A stretch of DNA of 64,000 nt from Blastocladiella emersonii ATCC 22665 (Eukaryota > Fungi > Blastocladiomycota), in contig JANHCV010000005.1 in the NCBI GenBank assembly GCA_025594325.1, positions 868,001 through 932,000 on the forward strand, in the 5' to 3' direction. The translations under genes were made by a program, and so were the position numbers. Below are positions 8,096 to 60,300 of the stretch, piece after piece. The number at the start of each line of letters is the position of its first letter. Positions within the stretch are counted from its first letter, which is position 1. The notes under the pieces are model-generated. The model worked only from the letters and a program-made list of their open reading frames with translations. It ran no database searches and was not told the DNA's origin.

Positions 8096-8674
8096 ATGGC
8101 CGCGTGCACCACCCGCTCGCCGACTTCCACCTCGGCGTCCGTCAACGCGCCGTCGGGCGGCACCACGTCGGGCAGCACCACGTCCGGCAGCGCCACGACG
8201 CCGTCGGGACCCGCGGCGTCGGCCGTCGTCCAGGAGCTCGACATCAACCTGCAGGAGTGGGACGACGTCGGCAGCGAGTCCGACATGACCGTGGTTCCCG
8301 CGTCGTCGTCCGCCGTGACCAAGAACAAGAACATCACCAAGATCGTCGTCGACTCGGAGGCCGATGAGGAGGTCGACGCCGACGAGGAGGAGAGCGAGTG
8401 CGAGTCGGGCCCGTCGTCGTCGTCAAGCCGCGCGCGCAAGATGGCCACCAAGGCCAAGGGCCGCGACAAGAACAAGACGGTCAAGACCCCGCCGGCCTCG
8501 CCCGCCAAGCGTACCCGCACGTCGGCCGTCAAGGGCAAGTCCGGCGCTGCCGTCCCTGCCGCCCAAGACGACGACGAGGCCGACGACGACGACTCGGCGA
8601 CCCCGCCGGCCTCGCCGACCAAGCGCGCGCGTCGCGGTCCCGCCAAGGGCAAGGGCAAGGACCGCTCGGCCTGA
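8096..8674 (+). CDS. Low-complexity acidic/basic protein or terminal exon with two TPPASPxKR motifs
   Basis: Host-like strongly C/G-ending codon usage, acidic tracts and basic NLS-like clusters. May be the surviving 3' part of the decayed gene upstream. Confidence 0.45.
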   Translation: MAACTTRSPTSTSASVNAPSGGTTSGSTTSGSATTPSGPAASAVVQELDINLQEWDDVGSESDMTVVPASSSAVTKNKNITKIVVDSEADEEVDADEEESECESGPSSSSSRARKMATKAKGRDKNKTVKTPPASPAKRTRTSAVKGKSGAAVPAAQDDDEADDDDSATPPASPTKRARRGPAKGKGKDRSA

Positions 8675-8829
8675 TCCTGATCCTGATCCTGTTCCTTCCT
8701 TCGTTTCTTTCGAAAATACTTCCGCTGTCTGATATATTCCAAACTCTTTTTCTTCCAACTGGTTACTACTCGAATTTGTGAGGTGCTCGTCGACTGGCGA
8801 GCTCAAAGAGTTTACCCCTGAACTCTGAG

Positions 8830-9095
8830 AACGCGTTTCAAAGACGCGTTGCGTCGGCGCTCGCGTTCGTGTTCTCACAACGATGACCCTGAACAAGGTC
8901 ATTGCCGACTTCGGCGACCCCAAGCTCCCGCATCGTTTTCCTGCCCGGTACCCGTACATGGTCCTCTCTCGAGCGCGCAGGACCGAGGACATCCTCATCA
9001 TCCGGTTCAACAGTTGGGTTCTCGTGCAGAAGGCATTACAGCACGTGGCGAAGGACATGGAGCGACTGTCCCTGCTGAGCAGGATTGAGAATTGA
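8830..9095 (+). pseudogene. PIF1-family / Helitron-type helicase C-terminal relic
   Basis: LAFVFSQ-[frameshift]-MTLNKVIADFG...YMVLSRARRTEDILII matches the SF1B pattern LAFA...KSQGxTLdKVxVD...YVALSR. N-terminal motifs are absent. Confidence 0.6.
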
Positions 9096-9354
9096 TAAAC
9101 TACATCACTTTCACCAACTGAAACAGTCTCAAGAAGCCAAGTAAAGCTACAGCTGAGACCCAAGTGTGTGCGCAGCACACACACCTAGTGGTCCCCTGTC
9201 TCGCTTTGCACCTCACCCAGGTGACCTGTCGGGACGACGTCACAAGTTGCCGTCTCATTCACAGATCCGGCTGTAGAGGGGTCTATTGGTGCCAAGAGCG
9301 GGTAGCTTATTGTTCCCGCTGATGAAATCGTTCGTTGTCTTGCGATCGACCTCA

Positions 9355-10000
9355 AACGCGTCGAACTCGGCCTGGTCATTGATCAGGAAAAACTCGTAGC
9401 CGAGAGGTACGTGACCTTGTTGCACTCCATGGCCTCATCGATCGTCATGGCGAAGGCGCACTCCTTGTCGGCCTCGACTAGCAGCGTGTACTTGGTCGCA
9501 AGAACTCACTGCGTGGCGCGCGATCAGCAAATGCCTCACGTGCCGTACACAGCGGTCCGAGGCGTTGACGTGGCCGGTGGCGACGGCATATTGGAGCAAG
9601 CCTTATAAAGCTCCGGCGCTCGCTCGGCGGAACAAACGAGCGCCGCGTCGGACCCGAGGTCAGCGTCGATCCGCGCCGTGAATTTGGCCTTAAACAGGCG
9701 GTGGACGTGCGCGACGAGGATCGGCAGCGAGATATCACGCTTGCGCGCCCTGCACAACAAGCACGTAAACCGGCAATCGGTCTCGCGGAAGCGGCCCTCC
9801 CCGAACGTCATGAACTTGGAGACGAGCTAGACACCAAGCGTGGAGCAGTCGGCCGTGAGCGCGACCTTGGTCCAGCCGCACAAGAAGCACTTCTCGTTCT
9901 CGTTGAGCGACGTGAACGCGAGAACGTCCGGCACTTTTTCGTTGATATGGTCGGCCGTAGTGGGCAATGAGAGGACCTGTTGCGGACGATGGTGCTTGCC
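9355..10000 (-). pseudogene. Decayed paralog of the HNH-like/NUMOD1-like gene at 4628-6330
   Basis: KVPDVLAFTSLNENEKCFLCG...LVSKFMTFGEGRFRETDCRFTCLLCRARKR...LGSDAALVC aligns with the intact copy. It has several in-frame stops and a frameshift. Confidence 0.88.
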
Positions 10001-10416
10001 GGCGATGGTGGATCCTCCACCGTCTTGAACTGCCGCAGCGAGGGTGCCTCTGCCGAATTGAGGAGTTGCGGTCGTCTTGGTAAGTTGATTGGCAGCGACG
10101 ACAGTTTTTATGGCGCTTGATTTGCTATCGTCTACAGTGTGCGACCTTGTGCTTTTGGAAACGTGACAGGCGGACGCGCCGAACATCTGCACGTGATTTG
10201 CCGTCACACAGCCTTCGGCTGGCACCGGCGCAGGGCTTTGCCCTCTCGCCCTTGCCCAGACTTGCGCCGCGCACGCTCTCGCACTCCCTGACCAAATCGT
10301 GCAACTCGCCCGCCTCCCGGCATGCATGCGGACGCTTGCCGACCCTGCGCTCCGGGCACGGTGATGTTCAGGTTGCGCATGATGGCGAGGTCGATGAAAA
10401 TTTTTTTTTAAGGCGG

Positions 10417-11310
10417 CCAGCGTCGCTTCGTCGAGTTGATTATCAGCGCCGCTTTGTTGGGTTGAAGTTCAACGTCGCCTTGTTGTGTTGATGACCAGCG
10501 TCGATTGATGACCAGCGTCGACTTGTCGGGTCAATGATCAGCGCCGCCTTGTTGGGTTGACGATGAGCATCGCCTTGTTGCGTTGATGTCCAGCGTCGCC
10601 TTGTTCAGTTGGAGTTCAGCGTCGTCTTGTTGCGTTGAAGTTCAGCGTCGCCTTGTTGCGTCGAAGCTCAGCGTCACCTCGTTGCGTTGACGACCAGCGT
10701 TGTTGCATTGACGACCAGCGTCACCTCGTTGCGTTGTGATCAGCGTCGCCTTGTTGGGTCGTGATCAACGTCGCCTTGTTGCATTAATGATCAGCGTCAG
10801 CTCGTTGTGTCGATGACTAGCGCCGCCTTGTTGCGTTGATGGCGAGCGTCGCCTTGTTGCGTCGATGACCAGCGTCGCCTTGTTGCGTTGATGACCAGCG
10901 TCGCCTTGTTGCGTCGATGACCAGCGTCACCTTGTTGCGTCGATGACCAGCGTCACCTCGTTGCGTCAATGACAAGCGCCGCTTTGGTGAGTTGTTGGTC
11001 AGCGTCGCCTCGTTGAGTTCAAGTCCAACGCGTCCTTGTTGAGTTCGTGATCAGCAGCGCCTCGTTGCGTCAATGACCAGCGTCGCCTCGTTGCGTTGCG
11101 TTGATGATCAGCGTTGCCTTATTGGGTTGACAATCAGCGCCGCGTTGTGTCTACGACCAGCGTCACCTTGTTGAGTTCGTAATCAGCGTCGCCTTGTTGA
11201 GTTCGTAATCAGCGTCGCCTTGTTGCGTTCATGATCAGCGTTGCCTCGTTGCTTTCATGATCAGCGTTGCCTCGTTGCGTTGATTGCCAGCGTCGCCTCG
11301 TTCCGTCGCT
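10417..11310. repeat. Minisatellite of roughly 34 diverged 26-bp units, consensus GATGACCAGCGTCGCCTTGTTGCGTT
   Basis: Unit starts at 10864, 10890 and 10916 give a period of 26. There are no unique spacers and no long ORF in the region. Confidence 0.95.
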
Positions 11311-11743
11311 GAGCGACGCCGCGCCACGCAACACTGATTGAAGAAGAGATCATGATCGAGTGCTGCGCTTGAGAGTCGACAAACAAACGAGTTGAGTTAG
11401 CTCAGACTACGCTGAAGTCGTCATAGCGAAACTATTGCGTTCCTGTCGAGATTCTGCCCCAACATATGGTTGCTCATCTCTATCGCGACACGATCAAGGC
11501 AAGGATCAGGGGCTGCGACTCAACTCAGCCGCGCTGCTGCTGCTGTTGCCGCATAACATGCTGCGCAGAGCGACAGTGACAAGGTAACACGTAAGGTGAA
11601 CCGCCAACTTGGCGCGGATGCGGCTAAAATCGCACAGCAACCAAGAAACGTCATTGACACATGAAGAAGCAACAACAGAGTACATATTTGTTGCGGGTTG
11701 ACTTTGATTCAGCGAGGGCGCGCGAGGGAGAAAGGGCGAGGGG

Positions 11744-11766
11744 ACGCGTTCAGCCACTCACGTGAC
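11744..11766 (+). promoter_or_regulatory. Composite ACGCGT + CACGTG motif, copy 1 (ACGCGTTCAGCCACTCACGTGAC)
   Basis: Near-identical copies at 12380-12404, 36828-36850 (reverse) and 54570-54592. Confidence 0.5.
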
Positions 11767-11937
11767 ATGATGAGGCAAGCCCAAATGTGACAATCAACGC
11801 CAGACCCGGTGGCGGAGCAGGTGGTGGAGGCACGGTTGCAGATGCGGTAGGCGGAGGTGCAGGACCAGAAGGCGAAAGCGACCTGGGTGCGACCGTTGAG
11901 GACAAGGTGTTTGAAGTAAGTGCAGCGCTTACATGCG

Positions 11938-12294
11938 CGTTGAACGGCGGCACGCGTGTTGAAAGTTCAGCGCGGTCGTTGGATCGTTGTTGATGAGGGC
12001 GAGGCGGAGAGCTGAGAGAGAGGACGGGTCGCGCAGATCTGCGGCGGACAGCGACAGCGACGCGAGCAGTCCATGGTATGCGTCAATCAGCTCATGGAGC
12101 TTCTTGCCGACGGGTTCAGGGGCGCGTGTATGAGCAGAATGCTGAGCGAGCCATGCGGCAGCGTGTCGAGCGGCAGCAGCGCGGTGGCCGTGCGACGCGA
12201 AGGTGGCGTAGTTGCTCGAGTCGGGGCAAAGCCAGTCGACGAGGCGGTCACACTCCTCCGCGGTCCACCTTGGCCGACTCTCGTGTTGCGGCAT
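11938..12294 (-). CDS. Myb/SANT-like domain exon
   Basis: MPQHESRPRWTAEECDRLVDWL...NY...R..EPVGKKLHELIDAY resembles Myb/SANT-like trihelix domains. It ends at a GTAAGC donor-like site; the downstream exon was not identified. Confidence 0.5.
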
Positions 12295-12379
12295 GTTACA
12301 GCCGCTCAAGCTTTCGTTTCGTGGAGGAGAAGTGGAGTGCGCAACGTCGCCCGAGCCAAAGTCGCGAGCAAGCCGCAAA

Positions 12380-12404
12380 ACGCGTTCAGCCACAGTCACG
12401 TGAC
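12380..12404 (+). promoter_or_regulatory. Composite ACGCGT + CACGTG motif, copy 2
   Basis: ACGCGTTCAGCCACAGTCACGTGAC, lying between the divergent Myb-like and F-box-like starts. Confidence 0.5.
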
Positions 12405-12483
12405 ATGTACGACTTGATGAAACCAAGTGAAATCCGCCAAAAGCACGTGACACAGACCGAGACTTTCGAAGGGGCCACCCAAT

Positions 12484-12523
12484 ATTTCAGGGCAAAGCCC
12501 TGCATTTCAGGGCAAAGCCCTGC
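12484..12523. repeat. Two tandem 20-bp repeats, each containing a perfect hairpin CAGGGC-AAA-GCCCTG
   Basis: ATTTCAGGGCAAAGCCCTGC occurs twice. An opposite-orientation copy (CAGGGCTTTGCCCT) lies at 10231-10244. Confidence 0.85.
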
Positions 12524-12606
12524 ATGCTCGCTGACCAAATCCGGTGGGTGCGTCAGCGCACTCTGCGGCGCACGGACAGGCCAGCTTCCCCTCTGATTCG
12601 CAGCCC

Positions 12607-14869
12607 ATGGATTCACCTCTTGCAATGGATCTAATGAACGACTCTATGCAACCTGACGAGAACGTGCTCACTCGACTCCCCGTGGAGGTGGCGACCGTTG
12701 TTCTCCAGATCGCGGAGCCACGCCCCGCCGTCGCTGCAGCTGCATCCTCTGTTCACGCGCTAGCCAGCGTTGAGCTGGTGTGCTTTGCGTGGACGTTCGG
12801 CGTCGTTGGACGTCTTGTCGACCTTTCGATGCGCGGACCCTCGCCACCCGTTGACCCTTTGGCCCGGCTTGTATCGCTGGATGCGCGAAATGGCGCCGTT
12901 TTGATCCCATCCGAGCTTTATGCCAAGATGGTTTCGCTTTTGATCCGCCGAGCACGTCTCCAAAGTGTTGGTCCGGTGCCCATTCTCGACTATCTAAACG
13001 CAGTGCACCGCGACGAGATCGCCAGACATATATTTCAACATCCACTTGCGGAACTTGTTCGGCTTGTTATCGCGGTGGTCATGTTTGGCTGGATCGATTT
13101 GCTGCGGTCGATCCTCGACAAAGTTGCTGTCGACATGCGCGCACTCCTCGACCTCGAGCTCGAATTACTGGAATGGGCTAGCCTCGCTATGGACTTGTCA
13201 CCTATAGCCGGTTTTGCTGCTGGATTCGAGATGCCCACGACACCAATGCGCTTCGCAGACGCTCTCGGATACCTCGCGGCCTTGGTATGGAACGTCCCGA
13301 CTTTTCAGGTCCTTTGTTCCGAAGCACGTTATGAATTGAATCAAGCCCAGCTTGCCGTGGTGCTGTCCCAGCAGGGGCCGGCGGAACTTGTGCTTCGTGC
13401 AGCAACAATGCAGCCGACTGCTTGCAAGGCCGCTGAAATCTTCATCTGGATCTTTGAGTGCGGCTGGCAAATGTCGGAGGCGGTGCGTGGTCTTTACGTC
13501 CATGCAACTTTCTTCGTTGGTTCCGAGATATTCATCCCGCTGCTCGGACGGTTCCCGGATCTGGTGCTTTCCTCTCTCCCAATTGACGATGACCTGCAGG
13601 ACGTGATTCTTGACGTCGCGTGGGCGACAATCAATCCCGCCGACCCCGAGGACTTCATTCCCGATCAACTTGGATCTTGTATCATTGAGTATTTTGACAG
13701 CGGCATGTTATCCGTAGGTGACCTCCTCATCCTTGAAAGCCATGGACTTGTCGCTCGCGCCTGCTGGCCGTACCTTCTCGGAGCCGCCATTGCTCGCAAA
13801 GCTTTCGATCTCGTCGCGTGGATTCGTGACAGCGTTACGGAAGCGGAGGAATGGCAAGAGTTGTTGATCCAAGGTGCGCCAGCACACGGTTTCCCTTGCA
13901 CACCAGTGCATTCTTCTCACCTTCGCTGCACGATGAGTTTAGCGTTCACCAAAGGTTGCAATGACCGTCGCAGGTCTCATGGATTCTGCTCATCATTTGT
14001 TCTTCAGCACGCACTTGTTCCTGGTCCCAACGGGGATACCGTCAGCGAACTCGACCTGGACGCTTTCATCAGCGCGTTTCGAACAGCTGTGGGCGACACG
14101 GTTCAGAACTGGCAGTGCGCCTTTCTCTTTGGTCGGTTTCCTGCGCTTCCGTTCGTCACAGCGCTTATTGAGTCTTCGGATGACGACGACAGTGGTCTTG
14201 CCAGGTCTGCTGCAATCGATGCGACGTGGCTCCTTGTATCGGCTTTCGTGGACCCTGCTGTGCGGCCAACGCTGGTCCGCTTGATTGATCGGTCTGATGC
14301 TGCCCACCACTTTCTGCACGGCATGCTTCGCGCACTCGTACTTCCTGAGGGTGAATTTTTCGAGACCGAACGGCCCGAGTACTTAGACAATGAGACTCAG
14401 CTCTGCACCAAGTGTCCCCTCGCACTCCAGCAGATATGGCGGGGATCTTTTTGAATTTCTCATCCCAATGTGTATCCCGGAGCACTTCACGTCTTTTGCG
14501 CCGCTCGTCGACAGCATTTGGTCGTTGCTTCGCAAGTGGTCATTCGTGGAGCGGCTGGATGTCGATTGTGGGCGTCGTTGTACTCGTGTTGCGTCCGCAC
14601 GACTCGTCGCTCAAGTGGTGATTTGCGTCAATCCGAAGCGAGCTTTGGCAGAAGTGGAGAAGCTGACGAGACTTGCAGGCTCAAACTCGTTGCCGATGCT
14701 ACGCATTTTCCCCAATCGTGCACTGCAAGACCTTGCAGACCATGGGATTGTGACCGACCTCGGCAAGCTCTTTTCCCAATTGAGTGCGCACGCCGACCCG
14801 CTCGAAGTCGCAAACGAGCTTGCCCGAACGGCACCGGACTATTTCAAAGTTGGGAACTCCCCTGCGTGA
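12607..14869 (+). CDS. F-box-like/helical-repeat family protein (long type) with a probable intron at 13874-13942 and a frameshift at the G4 run 14441-14444
   Basis: N-terminus LTRLPVEVATVVLQIAEPR. Removing one G gives QQIWRDLFEF, matching the paralog QQAWRDVAAIF, and continues into ORF 14390-14869. May be a sequencing error or a pseudogene. Confidence 0.72.
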
Positions 14870-15481
14870 CAATATCGTCTAATCTGCCGTTCCTCATGTC
14901 GTTCATCCTGATACGGGTCGCACGGTTACAGCCCACTTTGATACCTGGTCCTGGCTAGTCATGAGCTCGTGGAGTTTGAGAGGCACTAACCGTGCTGACG
15001 GATGAAACCCTTGGCGTTGCCCGGCGTTGCACGTTTGGCACGCGTCTCGCGTCGACACGCGTAAATAAGAACCGGTTTGCCCTGCCGTGTCCTTCGATGA
15101 CAGTGGGGTCTCAACTCTCGAACAACAGCGGGGTGAGCAACGTGGACCCATTATCCAACGCGGCCTCGACTTTCTTGATCGTGCTGTGGAGCCGGTACAC
15201 GAAATTCGTCGCTGTTTGCATCAGCTACAACCCTTTTCCGGTTTAAGTTGCGAGAGACTTGCCGCCGTTGCTAGCACGCCAATGACGTGTTGCACATCGG
15301 CACGTGTGGGTCACTCGGAAATTTGGAGGCGTGCGTCAGGTCAAGGTCAGCCGAGCTCGGCTCTCGCGCTCTCTTCGTTCACATCCCCTCTCGTCACCCT
15401 GTCATGGATCCAATGAATAACTCTATGCAATTGAGAGATAACCCGTTTGCTCGACTTCCCGTGGAGTTGGTGACGGTTGTC

Positions 15482-15691
15482 GTATTAATCAACTATGACT
15501 ATAAAAACCTACGATAATCCCTACCGGACAATGGTTTGGGGACAGACTTCGATGGCCCAGCACAGGCGCAGCCTGGTTGGGACCACCACCTTGAGGGGCT
15601 CCGCGGACCAAGTCCTTGGAGGCGAGCGTGCAAAGTACCAATCAGTGCACACCCGCACAAACCCCCCACATTGGCGGATAGAGAAGCCCGT
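15482..15691 (-). ncRNA. Candidate omegaRNA scaffold region of the Fanzor-like remnant
   Basis: Lies directly 3' of the RuvC-III fragment. Has an 11-bp G-U-containing stem (15622-15656) plus smaller hairpins. Expression is unknown. Confidence 0.4.
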
Positions 15692-15802
15692 CTACACCGT
15701 AGAGGGAGCGGCGGCAGGAACGTTGACGAGCACCAGCTTGTCGAGGTTCATGCACAGGATGTTGAGCGCCGCGTTGGTGTCGCGCTGGCGCTGGTCGCGG
15801 CA
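15482..15802 (-). mobile_element. 3' remnant of a Fanzor/TnpB-like element: terminal RuvC-III coding fragment (15802-15692) plus ~210-nt structured 3' region
   Basis: Minus-strand CRDQRQRDTNAALNILCMNLDKLVLVNVPAAAPSTV* fits the TnpB/Fanzor C-x5-RDxNAAxNI signature. The segment is non-homologous to the host paralog and has several stem-loops downstream. Confidence 0.68.
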
Positions 15803-16239
15803 GGCCGATGCTTTCCCAATGGTGCGCTGCAAGACCTTGCTGGCCGCAACGCCATGGTCGGTCTTGTCAGCAAACTCTTCACGAACGTGGGCATGCACGC
15901 CGACCCGATTGAAATTGCTACCGAGCTTGCTCGGACGGCGCCCGACGCGTTTAAGGAGGGAAGCATCCCAGCGTGATGGCCCATGATTGATTTGCCACTG
16001 GTCCTGTTATTCAACTGGGTCTTGTTCACCGGGAATCGCCGCTCATATATATATAGTCCTGCTCAGTCGTGGAAGCTTGTCCGACCCACTCGAAACTAGC
16101 ATGGCATCGATGAAAATCCATTCGGGCTGCGGAACGCTCGTCGTTGGCGGTTCGCCACGTGTCTCGCGCTGCGCCACATTCATGTGACCGGTTCAGCGCC
16201 ACGGCATCACGAAATTCGTTTCAGGCTCGCAGGCGCCCA

Positions 16240-31122: not shown

Positions 31123-34100
31123 CGCGAGACATGGGAGACGCGTCGCGGTCACGCGGGTGATCAGCTGATGTTCGGCTCTGATCCGCTATAAATCTCGGCG
31201 GATCGCCCCGCCCACCCCTCGCTCTCTCTGACCCTAAAGGAGAGATGCAACTAGCAGCATAAAAGGCGAACGTACGGAGCACGACTCGTTGCTCGCACCC
31301 GTCACTGCCCTTTGGGAAGGTCCTCGAACCCCGATGTCCTGCGCGCCTTGAGCGAGAGCTCAGGCGCGCTCCTCTTGCAGAGGCCCGTCTGTTCCTCGGC
31401 CGTCGGCCTCCTCTCGAGGGGACTGATGCGGAACACGGGTGGACGTGTGGCACCAGCAAGTCGGTCGCTGTCCACGACGACAGTGAAAGCGGCCACAGCG
31501 GGGACATTCTATTCAGTGCAATATGCTGCAGCGCCGCCCCCTCGCGGCGGCGCGCACTCAATGCGGACTATTGTTGCGTCTCTCCCCTCTCTCCCTTGCT
31601 ACTTTGTGTTGTCGTGCTGCCCGGATCGAGGGACGTGTTGCTTGTTTCTATTGAGCGTGTGCGTTGAGGGCGAGTGGCTGAGTGGGCGGCTGGGGGAACA
31701 TGTTGCTGCCACCACGACCGTCCCCCTTCTCTCCTCCCATTGTCAACGCCCGTCACCAAACGCAATGTGTAACCTCATGCAACCTGAGGAACCGGGCCCG
31801 CCCATACGCGTTCTTGCGGATTTACCCCCCGAGCTGCTCATCGACGTGGTCCGACTCTGCAAGCCGCGCAGCTCGCTTGCTGCGGCGACTACCGTTCTTG
31901 GCAGCACGACGCGCGACGACCTCGTCTGGCACTCGTGGGTGCTGCGCCTGATTGCGCGCCTCGACGCTGCCACAGCAGGCCCACACCAACCGATCGGACT
32001 TGTCGCGCGGTTGTTCCACCTTGGTCCTCCCGCCGCACCTGACAAGCTCATCTTCCGGTACGCCAGCTTGCTTTGTCGTCGCATTCGCACCAGCGGCGTG
32101 GACGCAGCCCAGCTCCAAGCTCTCGCCGAGCAAGACCCCCTCACCTTGGCTGCCCTGCCGCCCTTGTGCCATCCCGGCCTTGGCTATCTGCGCCTCATGT
32201 TGGCAGCCATCAAGGACGGCCGTTTGGACCTATTTCGCAGCATGTTCCTGGCGCTCGCTGCTCATGCCCCGCAAGTTCTTGGCGTTGTGATGGATCGGAG
32301 CCACTGGGCATCGTTCATGGGCGCAAGTCACTGCAGGGAATTTGGTGCAAGTATCGCCAGCAGCACCACATCTGGGTCTGTCGCCGAGGCCGTTCCATGG
32401 GACAAGGCACTCATGATTGACGCTCTCGCGTTCACCGCCATCGGCGATTTGCGCTACTTGGCGCTCCAAACCCTGCTTTTGTACGACGGAGCTCACCGCG
32501 TATACGTTCCTCAACTGCTCGCAATCGTTGGCGAGATTCCTTCGATGTACTTGCAGGCTCACGGGCGCGAGGAAGATCACGCGGCCATGTTTGCATGGCT
32601 TTACGAAAGTTTGCCGCTTATGCCGCAATCTGCGCACGCGTCATACGTCAGTGCTGCTCTTAGACATTGTGGCCATCGCTGCGTTCTCCAACAGCTGCGA
32701 CAGCTTCCCAAGCTCATCGTTCCTGCCCTGCCGCTTCAACCTTGCATGTTCAGCAACTTTCATGGCTTTTGCAGTCAGATTATTCGCCGGTTTGATGACG
32801 ATTTACCGGTTAGCGAGCTCGAGCTTCTTGACCGCGACGGTTACATTCAAACTGAGGCCTGCAGCCATATCGTTGGTGCTGCAATTGCACGTGGGGAGGG
32901 TGCGTTTGTGGCCAAGCTTTGGAAGCAACGCGACGAGCCAACGTGGCGCGCGCTCTTGCTTGAAGGTACTGAGCTGCCCGGCACTACGTGATAAAAGTTT
33001 TCCACCGTGCTCACCCATGCTGTGCCGTGTAGCACATTCCTCAGCACATTCTTCACCATGTCGCCTCACAATCCGCCAACAATGATGGCGCCAGCCATCA
33101 ACATGCATGCCAGTTGAGCCCGCTCAACCTCAAAGAATTTGGAAGAGTCTACCTCAAGGCTATTTGGCCCGGCTCCAGTCCCACTCGGTGGTCCGTTGCC
33201 CATTGCTTGCTTGAGGGCGATTTTGTTGCCCATCCGCTGGACTTGCTGCACATGTTTGTCCTCTGACACAAAGTTGACCCGGTGATCAAACACGGCTTCG
33301 CTTTGGAAGCACCTATTCACCGAAAGCTCACTGTAGACGTCGTGCGTTTAGTTGTCGCCACAATCGCAAATCCAGACACTCGAATTGCCACCATAACCAC
33401 AATACTGCAAGCCAAGCGGCAGTCCGCGCTTCTTACCGCCATGCTTGCAGTTTTCATGTCGCCAGAGGGCATGAAAACAAGTGCTTGTCATTCCGCCGCG
33501 TGGCTTCTTCCTGGACTTGACACTTGCGCCAACTGCCCGCTGCTCGCTCAGCAGGCGTGGTGGGATACGGTGGCCGTGCTTGCTGCAGAGGTTCAAGAGA
33601 TCGCGTTATATGGTGCCATGCCAGAGTGGTTGCTCCTGTGCGGATTCGTGGACACTGCGCGCTTGTGCGACTCCCGCTTTGGCTGCGACGCATTCGCTTC
33701 AGCTCAGCAAATCGCGCACATCTACTTTGGCACACAAGTGGCCTCTCCCGCGGACCTGATATCTGGCGAAATTTGATACTTGCCCTACCTCGACTCGTCA
33801 ACGATCTGGCAGCTCCTTCCTGACGGCGCGCTTGACAATGGCCTCTCACCGCTTATGCTGGCACTATTGGTCAATAGGACAGCTCACACGCGTGAAGTTG
33901 ACGTCTCCATCATGGTGGCCATGGCCAAGCACTGTGCTCCGCAGACGGTCATGTCCGCCGAGTTTGTCGCGGCACTGGAAGATAGTGACGCTGGATGATG
34001 GCTTCCGATCTATACATTTGCATCCCTTTGTGCCTCCTCAAGCTTCCCGAACAGACAGGCTGTTGCGCAAAGCTGAGGTTAGTACTCGTGTCAGCGGTCT

Positions 34101-36723
34101 GTTGGGCGGCCAACGCGCCAATCAACCCTGCATACCACGTCTCTCTGACATTGTATTGCGGTTGTCACACTTGCTGCCTCATGTGATAGCTCTCCGCCGC
34201 TAGTTGATCACATTAACACGTGGGTCGCACAGCCTTGCGTGTTAACTACTGAGCTGCCCGCATCGTGGGCACGTTGCTGATTCTTGTCTTTTCATGATCA
34301 TTGGCCCGGCCCCGGCGCAGTCGCGCGTCGTTTATGCGCAAGGGCGGTCACGACGGGTGGCGTCGGCGCCACTCGACAAGCGTCTCGACCTCGACGGCGA
34401 TCTGTTGCTCTCTTGCACCCCACTCCTAACAAACACCGCCATGTTAAACTCCATGCAACGTGCTCCTCCGGAGCTTAACCTTGCGAATTTCCCTCCTGAA
34501 GTGCTCGCCGAGGTGATCCGGCTCAGCGAGCCCCGTCGCGCTCTCGCGCCCTCCTCGGCCATCTTGCTCAGCGCAGCGCGAGACGACTTTGTCCGGCTCC
34601 TGTGGGCTCGCCGTGTGGTGGTGCAACTCAGCACCATCGTTGCGGGGCTACCGCCTCCAGATATGCCAGTCGTTTACAACCATCAGTTCGGCCAAGAACC
34701 CAAGTGGCCAAGTAACGACCTTGTCACGCACCTGTTCAAAACCGATCCCAACGACTCATCCACCCTTTCAGCGGCCCCGTGGTCCCTCGACCACAACTTC
34801 AACTCGAGCGGCTTACTGGTCCAGTTTACGGATCATCTGCTTCGCCACATTCGAGCGAGTGACGTGCAAGCCGATGCCCTTGTGGTCCAACTTAACCGCA
34901 ATGGTGGCAAATCGCACGCGTTGCGTCACCCTCTCGTAGCCTACCTCCACCTATTGGTCGCCGCAATTAGCTATGGTCGGGCTGACTTGTTCCACAACAT
35001 GCTCACCAAGCTCACAACCAAGTTTCCACACGCTCTCGACCTCTCGCTTCGTCCAGCCGACTGGGTACGGCTTCTCTACGACAAGCAAAACCCGAAATCT
35101 ACGCGGTACAAAGTCTGCAGCAAGCTTGGCCCCTTCGCGCACCCGGATTTTGTTGCCGGACTGCCGGACGTGCTAGCTCTTGTCGCCATCTTAAATTGGC
35201 GCGTCCCGCTGCTCGAGACCTTGCTGGCTGACGACGCCCATCCTATTGACACTGCTGCGCTTACCCGCTGCATGAGCGACCAGCAGTCTATCTACATTTT
35301 GCACCAACGCATGGACCTGTGCGAGCCCGAGCAGCTCAATGAGCAATTGGCCTTGTTTAAATGGCTGTTTGCGAGATTGGAGCACATGATGGAACCGGCA
35401 CGTAAAGCTTACGTGGCAGTCTCGCTCGAGCGGCGCATGTTTCGCCAGGTGATCCCGCTTCTGCAGCAGTTTCCACAGCACTTTTCGTGGGCCACGTCGC
35501 TTGACCCTCGCAACGTGGATGAGCTTCACGTTCTCGGGCGCTGCATTATTCGATGGTTCTATGACGATTTGTCACTACGCGAGCTTGATCTCCTTGACCG
35601 TCAAGGCTATGTGCAACCGTCGGCACATGCATCTCTCCTTGGCGCAGCGATTGCGCGAGGCGAACGTTCCCTGGTGCGCAAGTTTCGAGCGCTGCACGAC
35701 GACCAGGGTTGGGCTGCGCTCTTACTCGCTGGTACGAGTCTGACCTGTTGATCCGTACGCACCGTAACCGTCAAAGCTAATCGTGGCCATGCTGGTAGCC
35801 TTTGACCAAAGTCTCCATGCTCTGCAAGATGGACTTCCGCAGCGGATTCTTCACTTCGTGTCTACCAACGGCCGGACGGAAAACTCTCAAACTGCGCGCC
35901 GCTTGACACTGGACGCTTTGGTCGCATTTGCAAACGTTTATATCAAGCACGAATTCATGTGTGCTCTTCACACGAACGGGTTACTCAGCGGAAATTTTAT
36001 TGCTCATCCGCTTGACCTGCTTTATATGGTCGTCGGTCGCAGCAGATGCACGCAGACACCCATCATTTCGTGCGATGTTCGTGAAAACATTGAACGCCTG
36101 CTTGTGGTTACCATCGCAGACCCCAATACGCGAGACGAGGCAATGCACTTGATTCGAGAGGCAGAGCTTCAGACGCTACTTTTCACGGCGCTCCTTCCGG
36201 CTCGCGACCAGGACAAACTTTACCAAAACCTCTTTGCTTCTGCTTCAACCACACACGGAGCATCAACTTTGGAGCCGAGTGCCCCGTGCCCACTATTCGC
36301 TCAGCAGGCTTGGCGCGATGTAGCAGCCATTTTTGCAGCTGAACCGTTGGACGGCCCCACCTGCACCGCGGTTCAGGTATGGGGATCGATGGCGACCATG
36401 GTAGCGACCCCATGCGGTTGCAATTCCGACCTGGGCTGCGATTCTCTGGCGTCGGCTCTGCAGTGCGCGCAGATCTTGCTTGACCTTGACCCAACCGACG
36501 CGATTGCCTGCTTCTGCTATGAAGTCTTTGGCTCTTTTGCGCACGAAATACCGCTCACAGTCTGGCAGCTTATTCCCGAAGGTTTACTCGATGGTGCTGT
36601 CCCGCCTTACAGCTTGGCGAATTATGCCGTTCGCGCTGCTGCGCGGGAGAACATGGAGGTGTCCAACGTCGTGGCCATGCTTGCACGAGCCGCTCCCCTA
36701 GCGGTCACCTCAACCGAGTTCAC
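31123..36723 (+). repeat. Left arm of a 5,601-bp apparently identical inverted duplication
   Basis: Every ORF mirrors one in 54700-60300, with coordinate sums equal to 91423 and identical translations. The junctions were read by eye. Confidence 0.97.
31765..33998 (+). pseudogene. F-box-like/helical-repeat family member (long type); intact ~400-aa first exon, disrupted second exon
   Basis: LADLPPELLIDVVRLCKPR; donor G|GTACTG at 32966. The downstream frame is homologous to the 34441 gene (GDFVAHPLDLL, ANPDTR, CPLLAQQAW) but carries a frameshift and TGA at 33264 and 33774. Confidence 0.75.
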
Positions 36724-54680: not shown

Positions 54681-56982
54681 TTAAACTTCGAGAAACGTGG
54701 TGAACTCGGTTGAGGTGACCGCTAGGGGAGCGGCTCGTGCAAGCATGGCCACGACGTTGGACACCTCCATGTTCTCCCGCGCAGCAGCGCGAACGGCATA
54801 ATTCGCCAAGCTGTAAGGCGGGACAGCACCATCGAGTAAACCTTCGGGAATAAGCTGCCAGACTGTGAGCGGTATTTCGTGCGCAAAAGAGCCAAAGACT
54901 TCATAGCAGAAGCAGGCAATCGCGTCGGTTGGGTCAAGGTCAAGCAAGATCTGCGCGCACTGCAGAGCCGACGCCAGAGAATCGCAGCCCAGGTCGGAAT
55001 TGCAACCGCATGGGGTCGCTACCATGGTCGCCATCGATCCCCATACCTGAACCGCGGTGCAGGTGGGGCCGTCCAACGGTTCAGCTGCAAAAATGGCTGC
55101 TACATCGCGCCAAGCCTGCTGAGCGAATAGTGGGCACGGGGCACTCGGCTCCAAAGTTGATGCTCCGTGTGTGGTTGAAGCAGAAGCAAAGAGGTTTTGG
55201 TAAAGTTTGTCCTGGTCGCGAGCCGGAAGGAGCGCCGTGAAAAGTAGCGTCTGAAGCTCTGCCTCTCGAATCAAGTGCATTGCCTCGTCTCGCGTATTGG
55301 GGTCTGCGATGGTAACCACAAGCAGGCGTTCAATGTTTTCACGAACATCGCACGAAATGATGGGTGTCTGCGTGCATCTGCTGCGACCGACGACCATATA
55401 AAGCAGGTCAAGCGGATGAGCAATAAAATTTCCGCTGAGTAACCCGTTCGTGTGAAGAGCACACATGAATTCGTGCTTGATATAAACGTTTGCAAATGCG
55501 ACCAAAGCGTCCAGTGTCAAGCGGCGCGCAGTTTGAGAGTTTTCCGTCCGGCCGTTGGTAGACACGAAGTGAAGAATCCGCTGCGGAAGTCCATCTTGCA
55601 GAGCATGGAGACTTTGGTCAAAGGCTACCAGCATGGCCACGATTAGCTTTGACGGTTACGGTGCGTACGGATCAACAGGTCAGACTCGTACCAGCGAGTA
55701 AGAGCGCAGCCCAACCCTGGTCGTCGTGCAGCGCTCGAAACTTGCGCACCAGGGAACGTTCGCCTCGCGCAATCGCTGCGCCAAGGAGAGATGCATGTGC
55801 CGACGGTTGCACATAGCCTTGACGGTCAAGGAGATCAAGCTCGCGTAGTGACAAATCGTCATAGAACCATCGAATAATGCAGCGCCCGAGAACGTGAAGC
55901 TCATCCACGTTGCGAGGGTCAAGCGACGTGGCCCACGAAAAGTGCTGTGGAAACTGCTGCAGAAGCGGGATCACCTGGCGAAACATGCGCCGCTCGAGCG
56001 AGACTGCCACGTAAGCTTTACGTGCCGGTTCCATCATGTGCTCCAATCTCGCAAACAGCCATTTAAACAAGGCCAATTGCTCATTGAGCTGCTCGGGCTC
56101 GCACAGGTCCATGCGTTGGTGCAAAATGTAGATAGACTGCTGGTCGCTCATGCAGCGGGTAAGCGCAGCAGTGTCAATAGGATGGGCGTCGTCAGCCAGC
56201 AAGGTCTCGAGCAGCGGGACGCGCCAATTTAAGATGGCGACAAGAGCTAGCACGTCCGGCAGTCCGGCAACAAAATCCGGGTGCGCGAAGGGGCCAAGCT
56301 TGCTGCAGACTTTGTACCGCGTAGATTTCGGGTTTTGCTTGTCGTAGAGAAGCCGTACCCAGTCGGCTGGACGAAGCGAGAGGTCGAGAGCGTGTGGAAA
56401 CTTGGTTGTGAGCTTGGTGAGCATGTTGTGGAACAAGTCAGCCCGACCATAGCTAATTGCGGCGACCAATAGGTGGAGGTAGGCTACGAGAGGGTGACGC
56501 AACGCGTGCGATTTGCCACCATTGCGGTTAAGTTGGACCACAAGGGCATCGGCTTGCACGTCACTCGCTCGAATGTGGCGAAGCAGATGATCCGTAAACT
56601 GGACCAGTAAGCCGCTCGAGTTGAAGTTGTGGTCGAGGGACCACGGGGCCGCTGAAAGGGTGGATGAGTCGTTGGGATCGGTTTTGAACAGGTGCGTGAC
56701 AAGGTCGTTACTTGGCCACTTGGGTTCTTGGCCGAACTGATGGTTGTAAACGACTGGCATATCTGGAGGCGGTAGCCCCGCAACGATGGTGCTGAGTTGC
56801 ACCACCACACGGCGAGCCCACAGGAGCCGGACAAAGTCGTCTCGCGCTGCGCTGAGCAAGATGGCCGAGGAGGGCGCGAGAGCGCGACGGGGCTCGCTGA
56901 GCCGGATCACCTCGGCGAGCACTTCAGGAGGGAAATTCGCAAGGTTAAGCTCCGGAGGAGCACGTTGCATGGAGTTTAACAT
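54681..56982 (-). CDS. Inverted duplicate of the 34441-36742 F-box-like gene; exons 56982-55692, 55624-54681
   Basis: Identical translation except the final residues (TTFLEV vs TAVLNA), which fall outside the identity tract. Confidence 0.8.
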
Positions 56983-59900
56983 GGCGGTGTTTGTTAGGAG
57001 TGGGGTGCAAGAGAGCAACAGATCGCCGTCGAGGTCGAGACGCTTGTCGAGTGGCGCCGACGCCACCCGTCGTGACCGCCCTTGCGCATAAACGACGCGC
57101 GACTGCGCCGGGGCCGGGCCAATGATCATGAAAAGACAAGAATCAGCAACGTGCCCACGATGCGGGCAGCTCAGTAGTTAACACGCAAGGCTGTGCGACC
57201 CACGTGTTAATGTGATCAACTAGCGGCGGAGAGCTATCACATGAGGCAGCAAGTGTGACAACCGCAATACAATGTCAGAGAGACGTGGTATGCAGGGTTG
57301 ATTGGCGCGTTGGCCGCCCAACAGACCGCTGACACGAGTACTAACCTCAGCTTTGCGCAACAGCCTGTCTGTTCGGGAAGCTTGAGGAGGCACAAAGGGA
57401 TGCAAATGTATAGATCGGAAGCCATCATCCAGCGTCACTATCTTCCAGTGCCGCGACAAACTCGGCGGACATGACCGTCTGCGGAGCACAGTGCTTGGCC
57501 ATGGCCACCATGATGGAGACGTCAACTTCACGCGTGTGAGCTGTCCTATTGACCAATAGTGCCAGCATAAGCGGTGAGAGGCCATTGTCAAGCGCGCCGT
57601 CAGGAAGGAGCTGCCAGATCGTTGACGAGTCGAGGTAGGGCAAGTATCAAATTTCGCCAGATATCAGGTCCGCGGGAGAGGCCACTTGTGTGCCAAAGTA
57701 GATGTGCGCGATTTGCTGAGCTGAAGCGAATGCGTCGCAGCCAAAGCGGGAGTCGCACAAGCGCGCAGTGTCCACGAATCCGCACAGGAGCAACCACTCT
57801 GGCATGGCACCATATAACGCGATCTCTTGAACCTCTGCAGCAAGCACGGCCACCGTATCCCACCACGCCTGCTGAGCGAGCAGCGGGCAGTTGGCGCAAG
57901 TGTCAAGTCCAGGAAGAAGCCACGCGGCGGAATGACAAGCACTTGTTTTCATGCCCTCTGGCGACATGAAAACTGCAAGCATGGCGGTAAGAAGCGCGGA
58001 CTGCCGCTTGGCTTGCAGTATTGTGGTTATGGTGGCAATTCGAGTGTCTGGATTTGCGATTGTGGCGACAACTAAACGCACGACGTCTACAGTGAGCTTT
58101 CGGTGAATAGGTGCTTCCAAAGCGAAGCCGTGTTTGATCACCGGGTCAACTTTGTGTCAGAGGACAAACATGTGCAGCAAGTCCAGCGGATGGGCAACAA
58201 AATCGCCCTCAAGCAAGCAATGGGCAACGGACCACCGAGTGGGACTGGAGCCGGGCCAAATAGCCTTGAGGTAGACTCTTCCAAATTCTTTGAGGTTGAG
58301 CGGGCTCAACTGGCATGCATGTTGATGGCTGGCGCCATCATTGTTGGCGGATTGTGAGGCGACATGGTGAAGAATGTGCTGAGGAATGTGCTACACGGCA
58401 CAGCATGGGTGAGCACGGTGGAAAACTTTTATCACGTAGTGCCGGGCAGCTCAGTACCTTCAAGCAAGAGCGCGCGCCACGTTGGCTCGTCGCGTTGCTT
58501 CCAAAGCTTGGCCACAAACGCACCCTCCCCACGTGCAATTGCAGCACCAACGATATGGCTGCAGGCCTCAGTTTGAATGTAACCGTCGCGGTCAAGAAGC
58601 TCGAGCTCGCTAACCGGTAAATCGTCATCAAACCGGCGAATAATCTGACTGCAAAAGCCATGAAAGTTGCTGAACATGCAAGGTTGAAGCGGCAGGGCAG
58701 GAACGATGAGCTTGGGAAGCTGTCGCAGCTGTTGGAGAACGCAGCGATGGCCACAATGTCTAAGAGCAGCACTGACGTATGACGCGTGCGCAGATTGCGG
58801 CATAAGCGGCAAACTTTCGTAAAGCCATGCAAACATGGCCGCGTGATCTTCCTCGCGCCCGTGAGCCTGCAAGTACATCGAAGGAATCTCGCCAACGATT
58901 GCGAGCAGTTGAGGAACGTATACGCGGTGAGCTCCGTCGTACAAAAGCAGGGTTTGGAGCGCCAAGTAGCGCAAATCGCCGATGGCGGTGAACGCGAGAG
59001 CGTCAATCATGAGTGCCTTGTCCCATGGAACGGCCTCGGCGACAGACCCAGATGTGGTGCTGCTGGCGATACTTGCACCAAATTCCCTGCAGTGACTTGC
59101 GCCCATGAACGATGCCCAGTGGCTCCGATCCATCACAACGCCAAGAACTTGCGGGGCATGAGCAGCGAGCGCCAGGAACATGCTGCGAAATAGGTCCAAA
59201 CGGCCGTCCTTGATGGCTGCCAACATGAGGCGCAGATAGCCAAGGCCGGGATGGCACAAGGGCGGCAGGGCAGCCAAGGTGAGGGGGTCTTGCTCGGCGA
59301 GAGCTTGGAGCTGGGCTGCGTCCACGCCGCTGGTGCGAATGCGACGACAAAGCAAGCTGGCGTACCGGAAGATGAGCTTGTCAGGTGCGGCGGGAGGACC
59401 AAGGTGGAACAACCGCGCGACAAGTCCGATCGGTTGGTGTGGGCCTGCTGTGGCAGCGTCGAGGCGCGCAATCAGGCGCAGCACCCACGAGTGCCAGACG
59501 AGGTCGTCGCGCGTCGTGCTGCCAAGAACGGTAGTCGCCGCAGCAAGCGAGCTGCGCGGCTTGCAGAGTCGGACCACGTCGATGAGCAGCTCGGGGGGTA
59601 AATCCGCAAGAACGCGTATGGGCGGGCCCGGTTCCTCAGGTTGCATGAGGTTACACATTGCGTTTGGTGACGGGCGTTGACAATGGGAGGAGAGAAGGGG
59701 GACGGTCGTGGTGGCAGCAACATGTTCCCCCAGCCGCCCACTCAGCCACTCGCCCTCAACGCACACGCTCAATAGAAACAAGCAACACGTCCCTCGATCC
59801 GGGCAGCACGACAACACAAAGTAGCAAGGGAGAGAGGGGAGAGACGCAACAATAGTCCGCATTGAGTGCGCGCCGCCGCGAGGGGGCGGCGCTGCAGCAT

Positions 59901-60300
59901 ATTGCACTGAATAGAATGTCCCCGCTGTGGCCGCTTTCACTGTCGTCGTGGACAGCGACCGACTTGCTGGTGCCACACGTCCACCCGTGTTCCGCATCAG
60001 TCCCCTCGAGAGGAGGCCGACGGCCGAGGAACAGACGGGCCTCTGCAAGAGGAGCGCGCCTGAGCTCTCGCTCAAGGCGCGCAGGACATCGGGGTTCGAG
60101 GACCTTCCCAAAGGGCAGTGACGGGTGCGAGCAACGAGTCGTGCTCCGTACGTTCGCCTTTTATGCTGCTAGTTGCATCTCTCCTTTAGGGTCAGAGAGA
60201 GCGAGGGGTGGGCGGGGCGATCCGCCGAGATTTATAGCGGATCAGAGCCGAACATCAGCTGATCACCCGCGTGACCGCGACGCGTCTCCCATGTCTCGCG
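54700..60300 (-). repeat. Right arm of the 5,601-bp inverted duplication
   Basis: Reverse complement of 31123-36723. Confidence 0.97.
57425..59658 (-). pseudogene. Inverted duplicate of the disrupted 31765-33998 F-box-like gene
   Basis: Same ORF fragments and the same stops as the left copy. Confidence 0.75.

Follow-up and report, generated by a model that had tools for sequence, protein, structure and literature searches.

The window analysed here is a stretch of 64,000 nucleotides from Blastocladiella emersonii ATCC 22665, and the presence in it of two nuclear RNase P RNA genes marks it as eukaryotic. On its plus strand, at 15404-15976, lies a broken gene, for which the intact neighbouring paralog at 12607-14869 (plus strand, no Pfam family) was used as a yardstick. 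The 5′ part of this host-gene relic (15404-15479) extends from the start codon to about codon 25-26 and includes the LPVELVTVV motif. Its nucleotide identity with the paralog is 78% (15404-15480 compared to 12625-12701), and in tblastn it aligns with paralog residues 28-56. The 3′ part (15803-15976) corresponds to the last 55 codons or so, ends with a stop codon at the same position as in the paralog, and shows 70% nucleotide identity with it (15812-15946 compared to 14708-14839), and 59% amino acid identity with the paralog stretch 14708-14866. Between the two, some 2.0 kb of the paralog (12702-14707) have no counterpart in the relic, and a block of about 320 bp is found instead. The initial annotation had pointed out this replacement and its lack of any match in the paralog; we recovered it at 15480-15802, as a single copy within the 64-kb window.

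The host gene belongs to a family of fast-diverging proteins of about 750 aa, unassigned in Pfam, which share 25-35% identity. They have in common the pieces LPxEVxTVV, close to the N-terminus, CxxCP...W, and, C-terminal, FPNGAL...ELARTAP. The genes form tandem clusters in lower-GC accessory blocks, and several members carry internal deletions. At least six members or relics were detected by tblastn in the window (among them 12544-14869, 31759-33560 and 34441-35733, plus mirror copies), and two in a second locus of assembly GCA_025594325.1, called L001 hereafter (8633-10106 and 12134-12910). The mirror copies belong to a 5,601-bp segment present twice in the window (31123-36723 and 54700-60300), inverted, 100% identical and 18 kb apart, and each copy contains, besides two genes of the family, one gene for nuclear RNase P RNA. 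Either a very recent duplication in inverted orientation or an artefact of the assembly accounts for this pair. The host gene had initially been described as F-box-like, a label that Pfam profiles did not support: neither the paralog, nor the relic, nor the L001 member gave a Pfam F-box hit. The best score with the Pfam F-box and F-box-like models was 11.9 bits for one distant family member, below the cut-off of 24.3, and an LPxEV-type motif is the sole support for the idea in the host gene.

We then turned to the block itself. Its minus strand reads ...ACRDQRQRDTNAALNILCMNLDKLVLVNVPAAAPSTV-stop, in agreement with the C-RDQRQ-RDTNAALNIL-stop peptide of the initial annotation. The core motif D.NA[ASG].N[ILVM] occurs once in the six frames of the window, for 0.005 occurrences expected from shuffled sequences. 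An exhaustive phmmer search of 1.84 billion representative proteins, with the 38-aa peptide as query, gave a sole match, to residues 602-639 of the hypothetical protein H9P43_004874 (hereafter P0001), a protein of 639 aa from the same strain, encoded at L001 on another contig, of 2.2 Mb. The match reaches the exact C-terminus of P0001, with 95% identity (E = 2.8e-13). At the DNA level, 314 of the 323 nt of 15480-15802 are identical to L001 11810-12132 (97%), gap-free. The alignment can be prolonged to window 15480-15811 and L001 11801-12132, again gap-free (321/332, E = 7e-159), a point to which we return below.

The 323-nt block, all of it read on the minus strand, comprises the last 36 codons of the gene (15695-15802, C604 to V639 of P0001), a TAG stop codon (15692-15694) and the full 3′ tail, non-coding and 212 nt long (15480-15691), 206 of whose 212 positions are identical to L001 11921-12132. 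The RuvC-III motif RDTNAALNIL, at 15755-15784, is preceded by the last cysteine of the zinc ribbon and five residues, and followed by the C-terminal tail of the protein. Beyond 15803, in the upstream direction, the frame runs through the host gene in antisense. As only the last Cys, the five-residue spacer and RuvC-III are kept, the fragment is not a nuclease gene; it cannot make a nuclease, and is dead. The coding part (3/108) and the tail (6/212) have diverged equally from the L001 copy, by about 2.8% overall, which fits neutral decay. The three substitutions of the coding remnant relative to P0001 are two non-synonymous changes (D to N and D to V) and one synonymous change. The earlier reading of the block as the 3′ end of a TnpB/Fanzor-family gene followed by its downstream tail is supported by the 97% match to the end of the P0001 gene and to the 212 nt beyond it. 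We conclude that the block is very probably the dead 3′-terminal remnant of a Fanzor1-type (TnpB-family) element of about 2 kb from B. emersonii.

This assignment led us to examine P0001. The profile search proposed in the initial annotation gave a score above threshold: with Pfam PF07282 (OrfB_Zn_ribbon / Cas12f1-like TNB, gathering cut-off 26.3 bits), P0001 scored 28.6 bits as a whole and 30.2 bits for residues 340-639. NCBIfam guided_TnpB and a PHROG transposase family gave weak matches over the same stretch. The TnpB/Fanzor signature defined by Bao and Jurka in 2013, D-x(125,275)-[TS][TS]-xx-[C4 zinc finger]-x(5,50)-RD (PMC3627910), is found in full, with D367 (in VVVMDPG), a spacing of 197 residues, S565 and S566, KR, cysteines C569, C572, C600 and C604, RDQRQ, and R610 D611. 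In Fanzor proteins RuvC-II is rearranged, the canonical Glu being replaced by Gly or Pro and an alternative Glu lying about 45 residues downstream (Jiang 2023, PMC10530073). Read by eye, P0001 appears to have a Gly at the expected place (VVLVG), with E562 36 residues downstream. D367, E562 and D611 are candidate catalytic residues, as read from the sequence alone. The N-terminal region contains a basic NLS-like stretch (RRVKKHAKTEAKRRERLEK). A single-sequence AlphaFold model of P0001 had a pLDDT of about 37.5, too low to read a RuvC fold, and phmmer against PDB sequences gave no meaningful match. Word-indexed searches for homologues with the whole protein, residues 330-639 or residues 430-639 among 5.8 billion clustered proteins found no close relative beyond P0001 itself, and protein-level locus searches of metagenome and viral contigs found no P0001-like locus. 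P0001 can be placed with good confidence in the TnpB/Fanzor superfamily, a placement made at superfamily level, above the clades Fanzor1a-d and Fanzor2. With its complete RuvC/zinc-ribbon ORF, the L001 copy is of the kind that the initial annotation had expected elsewhere in the genome and had named as a test.

The L001 copy is itself embedded in the host family. Positions 9617-11920 form one open frame of 767 codons, whose first 165 codons or so encode the C-terminal domain of a family member, fused in frame. The annotated H9P43_004874 starts at an internal ATG (L001 10001), and its first 36 residues or so are host-family sequence. Host homology stops near P0001 residue 36, about 20 codons short of the normal family stop. 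The 5′ side of this copy is rearranged. The next family gene lacks about 1.6 kb; past the right end, it begins at family residue ~508. Further upstream, at L001 9196-9534, an inverted repeat (79-nt arms, 89% complementary, 181-nt spacer) takes the place of the lost middle of a family member.

The two copies were compared at their right ends. Fanzor-derived DNA stops at the same nucleotide (...GATTAATACGA) in the window and in L001, and is followed by CAACCG in the former and TTTCAT in the latter, the flanks being unrelated. At L001, the match between the copies ends at 12132 and host-family homology restarts directly afterwards, at 12134. Host homology of the window stops at about 15479-15481, so that host sequence resumes within 1-2 nt of the terminus in both cases. 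The same end nucleotide in two different host contexts marks a real end of the element, and not a break at a random position. We conclude, from two junctions in two copies, that the junction at 15480 is a true element-end (transposition) junction. The element ends in ...ACGA, and a weak AT-rich hairpin of 6 bp lies 6 nt away from this terminus. No terminal inverted repeat pairing with the right end was found in L001 8500-12400. The initial annotation had suggested that a genomic copy would define both the right end and the target-site duplication: the former was obtained, as the nucleotide common to the two copies, and the sequence on either side of the window fragment shows no target-site duplication. 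We considered homing into the host family by sequence recognition and rejected it, as the two right-end flanks fall at different places in the family gene, about codon 25 in antisense (window) and about residue 508 in sense (L001). Such different positions and orientations in family genes fit a shared compartment better than sequence-specific targeting.

The other end of the fragment is of a different nature. The first nine bases of the prolonged alignment (15803-15811) contain 2 mismatches with L001, compared to 9 in the remaining 323, and these nine positions are also the host gene's own GCCGATGC. They are host sequence in microhomology with the element, and Fanzor DNA begins at 15802, which agrees with the initial placement of the junction near 15803. 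The microhomology covers 7 of 8 nt at 15804-15811, where the host has GCATCGGC (minus strand, 15811-15804) and Fanzor has GCGTCGGC. Base 15803 matches neither the host nor the Fanzor parent. This 5′ junction, near 15803, interrupts the nuclease ORF at codon 603/604 and is one of repair; with it went a loss of some 2 kb from the host gene, relative to the paralog.

To account for these two ends, we propose that the element inserted in antisense into the host gene, after host codon ~25, and that its 5′ 1.7 kb together with the adjoining host DNA would then have been lost by microhomology-mediated joining. This could have happened in two ways. The 5′ part may have been lost at birth, in a one-ended or abortive insertion that also removed target DNA, and we give this a little better than an even chance. 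Alternatively, as in the model of the initial annotation, a full-length antisense insertion may have been followed by one later microhomology-mediated deletion of about 3.8 kb, to which we give slightly less than an even chance. Our slight lean towards truncation at birth comes from the L001 copy, which is disturbed only on its 5′ side, and from the precedent of Helitron2-borne Fanzor1 in Chlamydomonas (PMC3627910). The lack of a target-site duplication and of a T-rich target, and an end that is not Helitron-like, were counted against it. In either case the disruption was recent, given a divergence of about 2.8% compared to 22-30% between host paralogs, host ends that are still open, and a conserved stop codon. 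Derivation of the window arrangement from that of L001 by deletion or inversion was rejected, as flank positions and orientations differ, and as the window keeps the natural host stop codon, which is absent from the upstream family member of L001.

A different origin would be templated filling: after a double-strand break in the host gene, the repair would have used a chromosomal Fanzor copy as template for about 320 nt, without any transposition at the site. Microhomology at one junction and the loss of about 2 kb of host DNA are in keeping with such a repair. So is the L001 family member whose middle was likewise replaced by a foreign piece of about 340 bp, the inverted repeat of 9196-9534; its resemblance to the window relic suggests that patchwork repair may be common in this compartment. 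However, copying would need to have ended, by coincidence, no more than 1-2 nt from the element end, which for a 2-kb donor amounts to about 1 in 500, and the right end shows no microhomology (0-1 nt). The need for a chance stop at the element's own end makes this origin improbable.

Target-primed reverse transcription typically gives constant 3′ ends and 5′ microhomology, with occasional target deletions. A 5′-truncated cDNA of a Fanzor mRNA or omegaRNA, inserted by LINE machinery, would therefore explain the constant 3′ end, the variable 5′ end, the 5′ microhomology and the target deletion. Fanzor1c is, moreover, reportedly associated with LINEs (PMC10530073). Against this, the 3′ end has neither poly(A) nor a simple repeat, and no reverse transcriptase was seen near the L001 copy. 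In addition, a read-through transcript or omegaRNA from L001 would bring along the L001 flank (TTTCATC...), where the window has host sequence. Since this flank was not co-transferred and poly(A) is missing, we regard retroposition as very unlikely.

We next considered the tail. Its predicted fold (213 nt) is more stable than those of dinucleotide shuffles (z = −3.2), and the two copies share the same predicted multibranch domain of about 150 nt, with 69 common pairs. The strongest helix, an 11-bp stem with two G-U pairs and a 13-nt loop (15622-15656, minus strand), is found in the minimum-free-energy and centroid folds of both copies; it carries no substitution between them and hence gives no information on covariation. 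The stems listed in the initial annotation are real, the 11-bp stem, CUCC/GGAG and GGAC/GUCC all being present in the minimum-free-energy fold. Five of the six substitutions between the tails fall at unpaired positions, with 65% of positions paired; the corresponding p of about 0.02 is naive, the fold having been computed from the same sequences. None of the six forms a compensatory pair, in copies that are 97% identical. Whether run with the gathering or with permissive thresholds, Rfam returned nothing but noise over the tail and assigned it to no family, and an exact 26-nt tail pattern was not found in metagenome and viral contigs.

OmegaRNAs are encoded in the end region of the transposon and in some cases overlap the stop codon; their guide lies past the right end (PMC10432273, PMC11423790). 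The tail, running from the stop codon to the right end, occupies this place and is a candidate omegaRNA scaffold region; such a role may reasonably be attributed to it in the parent element. Nothing indicates that the tail of the fragment is active. A run of T5 (window 15502-15507, minus strand) or T7 (L001 12105-12111) lies 22-28 nt before the right terminus. At such a run RNA polymerase III would stop short of the flank, and a guide-bearing transcript would call for another polymerase. The would-be guide of the window copy, 15460-15479, is the conserved 5′ motif of the host family and matches the paralog at 17 of 20 positions (12681-12700), where no such match is expected by chance.

The fragment could be imagined as a live orphan guide-RNA gene, whose omegaRNA, with a guide derived from the host motif, would be loaded in trans by a full-length nuclease and direct the cutting of family members. 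The full tail and 108 nt of the ORF end are kept, with a stable predicted fold and most tail substitutions outside paired positions; the flank matches the paralog; and the P0001 frame is open with all motif residues present. However, the tail has diverged as much as the dead coding part, with no sign of constraint, the only other target in the window has three mismatches, the T5-T7 run lies upstream of the guide, and the argument from substitutions is circular and concerns six events. We consider a live guide gene very doubtful. Finally, a chance resemblance to the motif, unrelated to Fanzor, might be suspected from the score of the fragment alone on the Pfam TNB profile (12-13 bits, E about 0.1, not significant, the fragment being too short for the profile) and from the few random hits that a whole-genome scan would give at 0.005 per window, but its probability is negligible, as it is refuted by 97% identity over 323 nt with the end of a gene that has the full family signature.

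The parent resembles the Fanzor1 elements described earlier (PMC3627910, PMC10432273, PMC10530073) in its signature, its TNB domain, the apparent Gly in RuvC-II with a downstream Glu, and its NLS-like N-terminus. As in these elements, a structured non-coding region extends from the stop codon to the right end, where omegaRNAs are encoded. The window copy differs from them in being reduced to the last 36 codons and the tail, with no nuclease. Closest in anatomy are CRe-1, 2 and 3 of Chlamydomonas, Helitron2-borne Fanzor1 elements that are frequently 5′-truncated with an intact 3′ end, a pattern described as “one-ended transposition” (PMC3627910). They share with the fragment a constant 3′ terminus and a missing 5′ part. 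Helitron2-borne Fanzor1 elements are recognised by a 3′ hairpin, a terminal inverted repeat that is asymmetric, a T-rich tetranucleotide just before the insertion and a variable target-site duplication, and the duplication is usual in published truncated copies (PMC3627910). In contrast, the fragment has neither a target-site duplication nor a T-rich target, host DNA was deleted rather than duplicated, and ...ACGA with a weak subterminal 6-bp AT-rich hairpin is all that its end presents.

The exact 3′ end, the microhomology-joined 5′ end and the kilobase-sized target loss also recall 5′-truncated LINE-1 copies, from which the fragment differs by the lack of poly(A), of a reverse transcriptase context and of a co-transferred donor flank. 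With TnpB-only derivatives of IS200/IS605 it shares the lack of detected terminal inverted repeats and target-site duplication, and a right end adjoining the guide-encoding flank; it differs by its eukaryotic host, and we identified neither a TnpA-type partner nor a TAM or a left-end hairpin. As 5′-truncated, 3′-intact Fanzor1 copies have been known since 2013, the fragment is an ordinary relic of a known kind.

To our knowledge, the movement of Fanzors in eukaryotes is still poorly understood. A divergence of about 3% indicates that the present lineage was recently mobile. Its two copies share an unusual anatomy: in both, the 3′ end is exact, the 5′ side is fused to host sequence, and kilobases of host DNA are gone. 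It is conceivable, though unlikely, that Blastocladiella Fanzors spread by one-ended copying anchored at the right end, which would leave 5′-truncated, microhomology-joined copies and host deletions, some tails then serving in trans as guide-RNA genes against the host family. If so, 5′-truncated copies would be routine products, and some orphan tails could act as guides against the multigene family that surrounds them. Lastly, the comparison of the two copies fixes to the nucleotide the right terminus of an otherwise orphan Fanzor, and gives the position where the guide is expected to start, should H9P43_004874 be tested as an RNA-guided nuclease.
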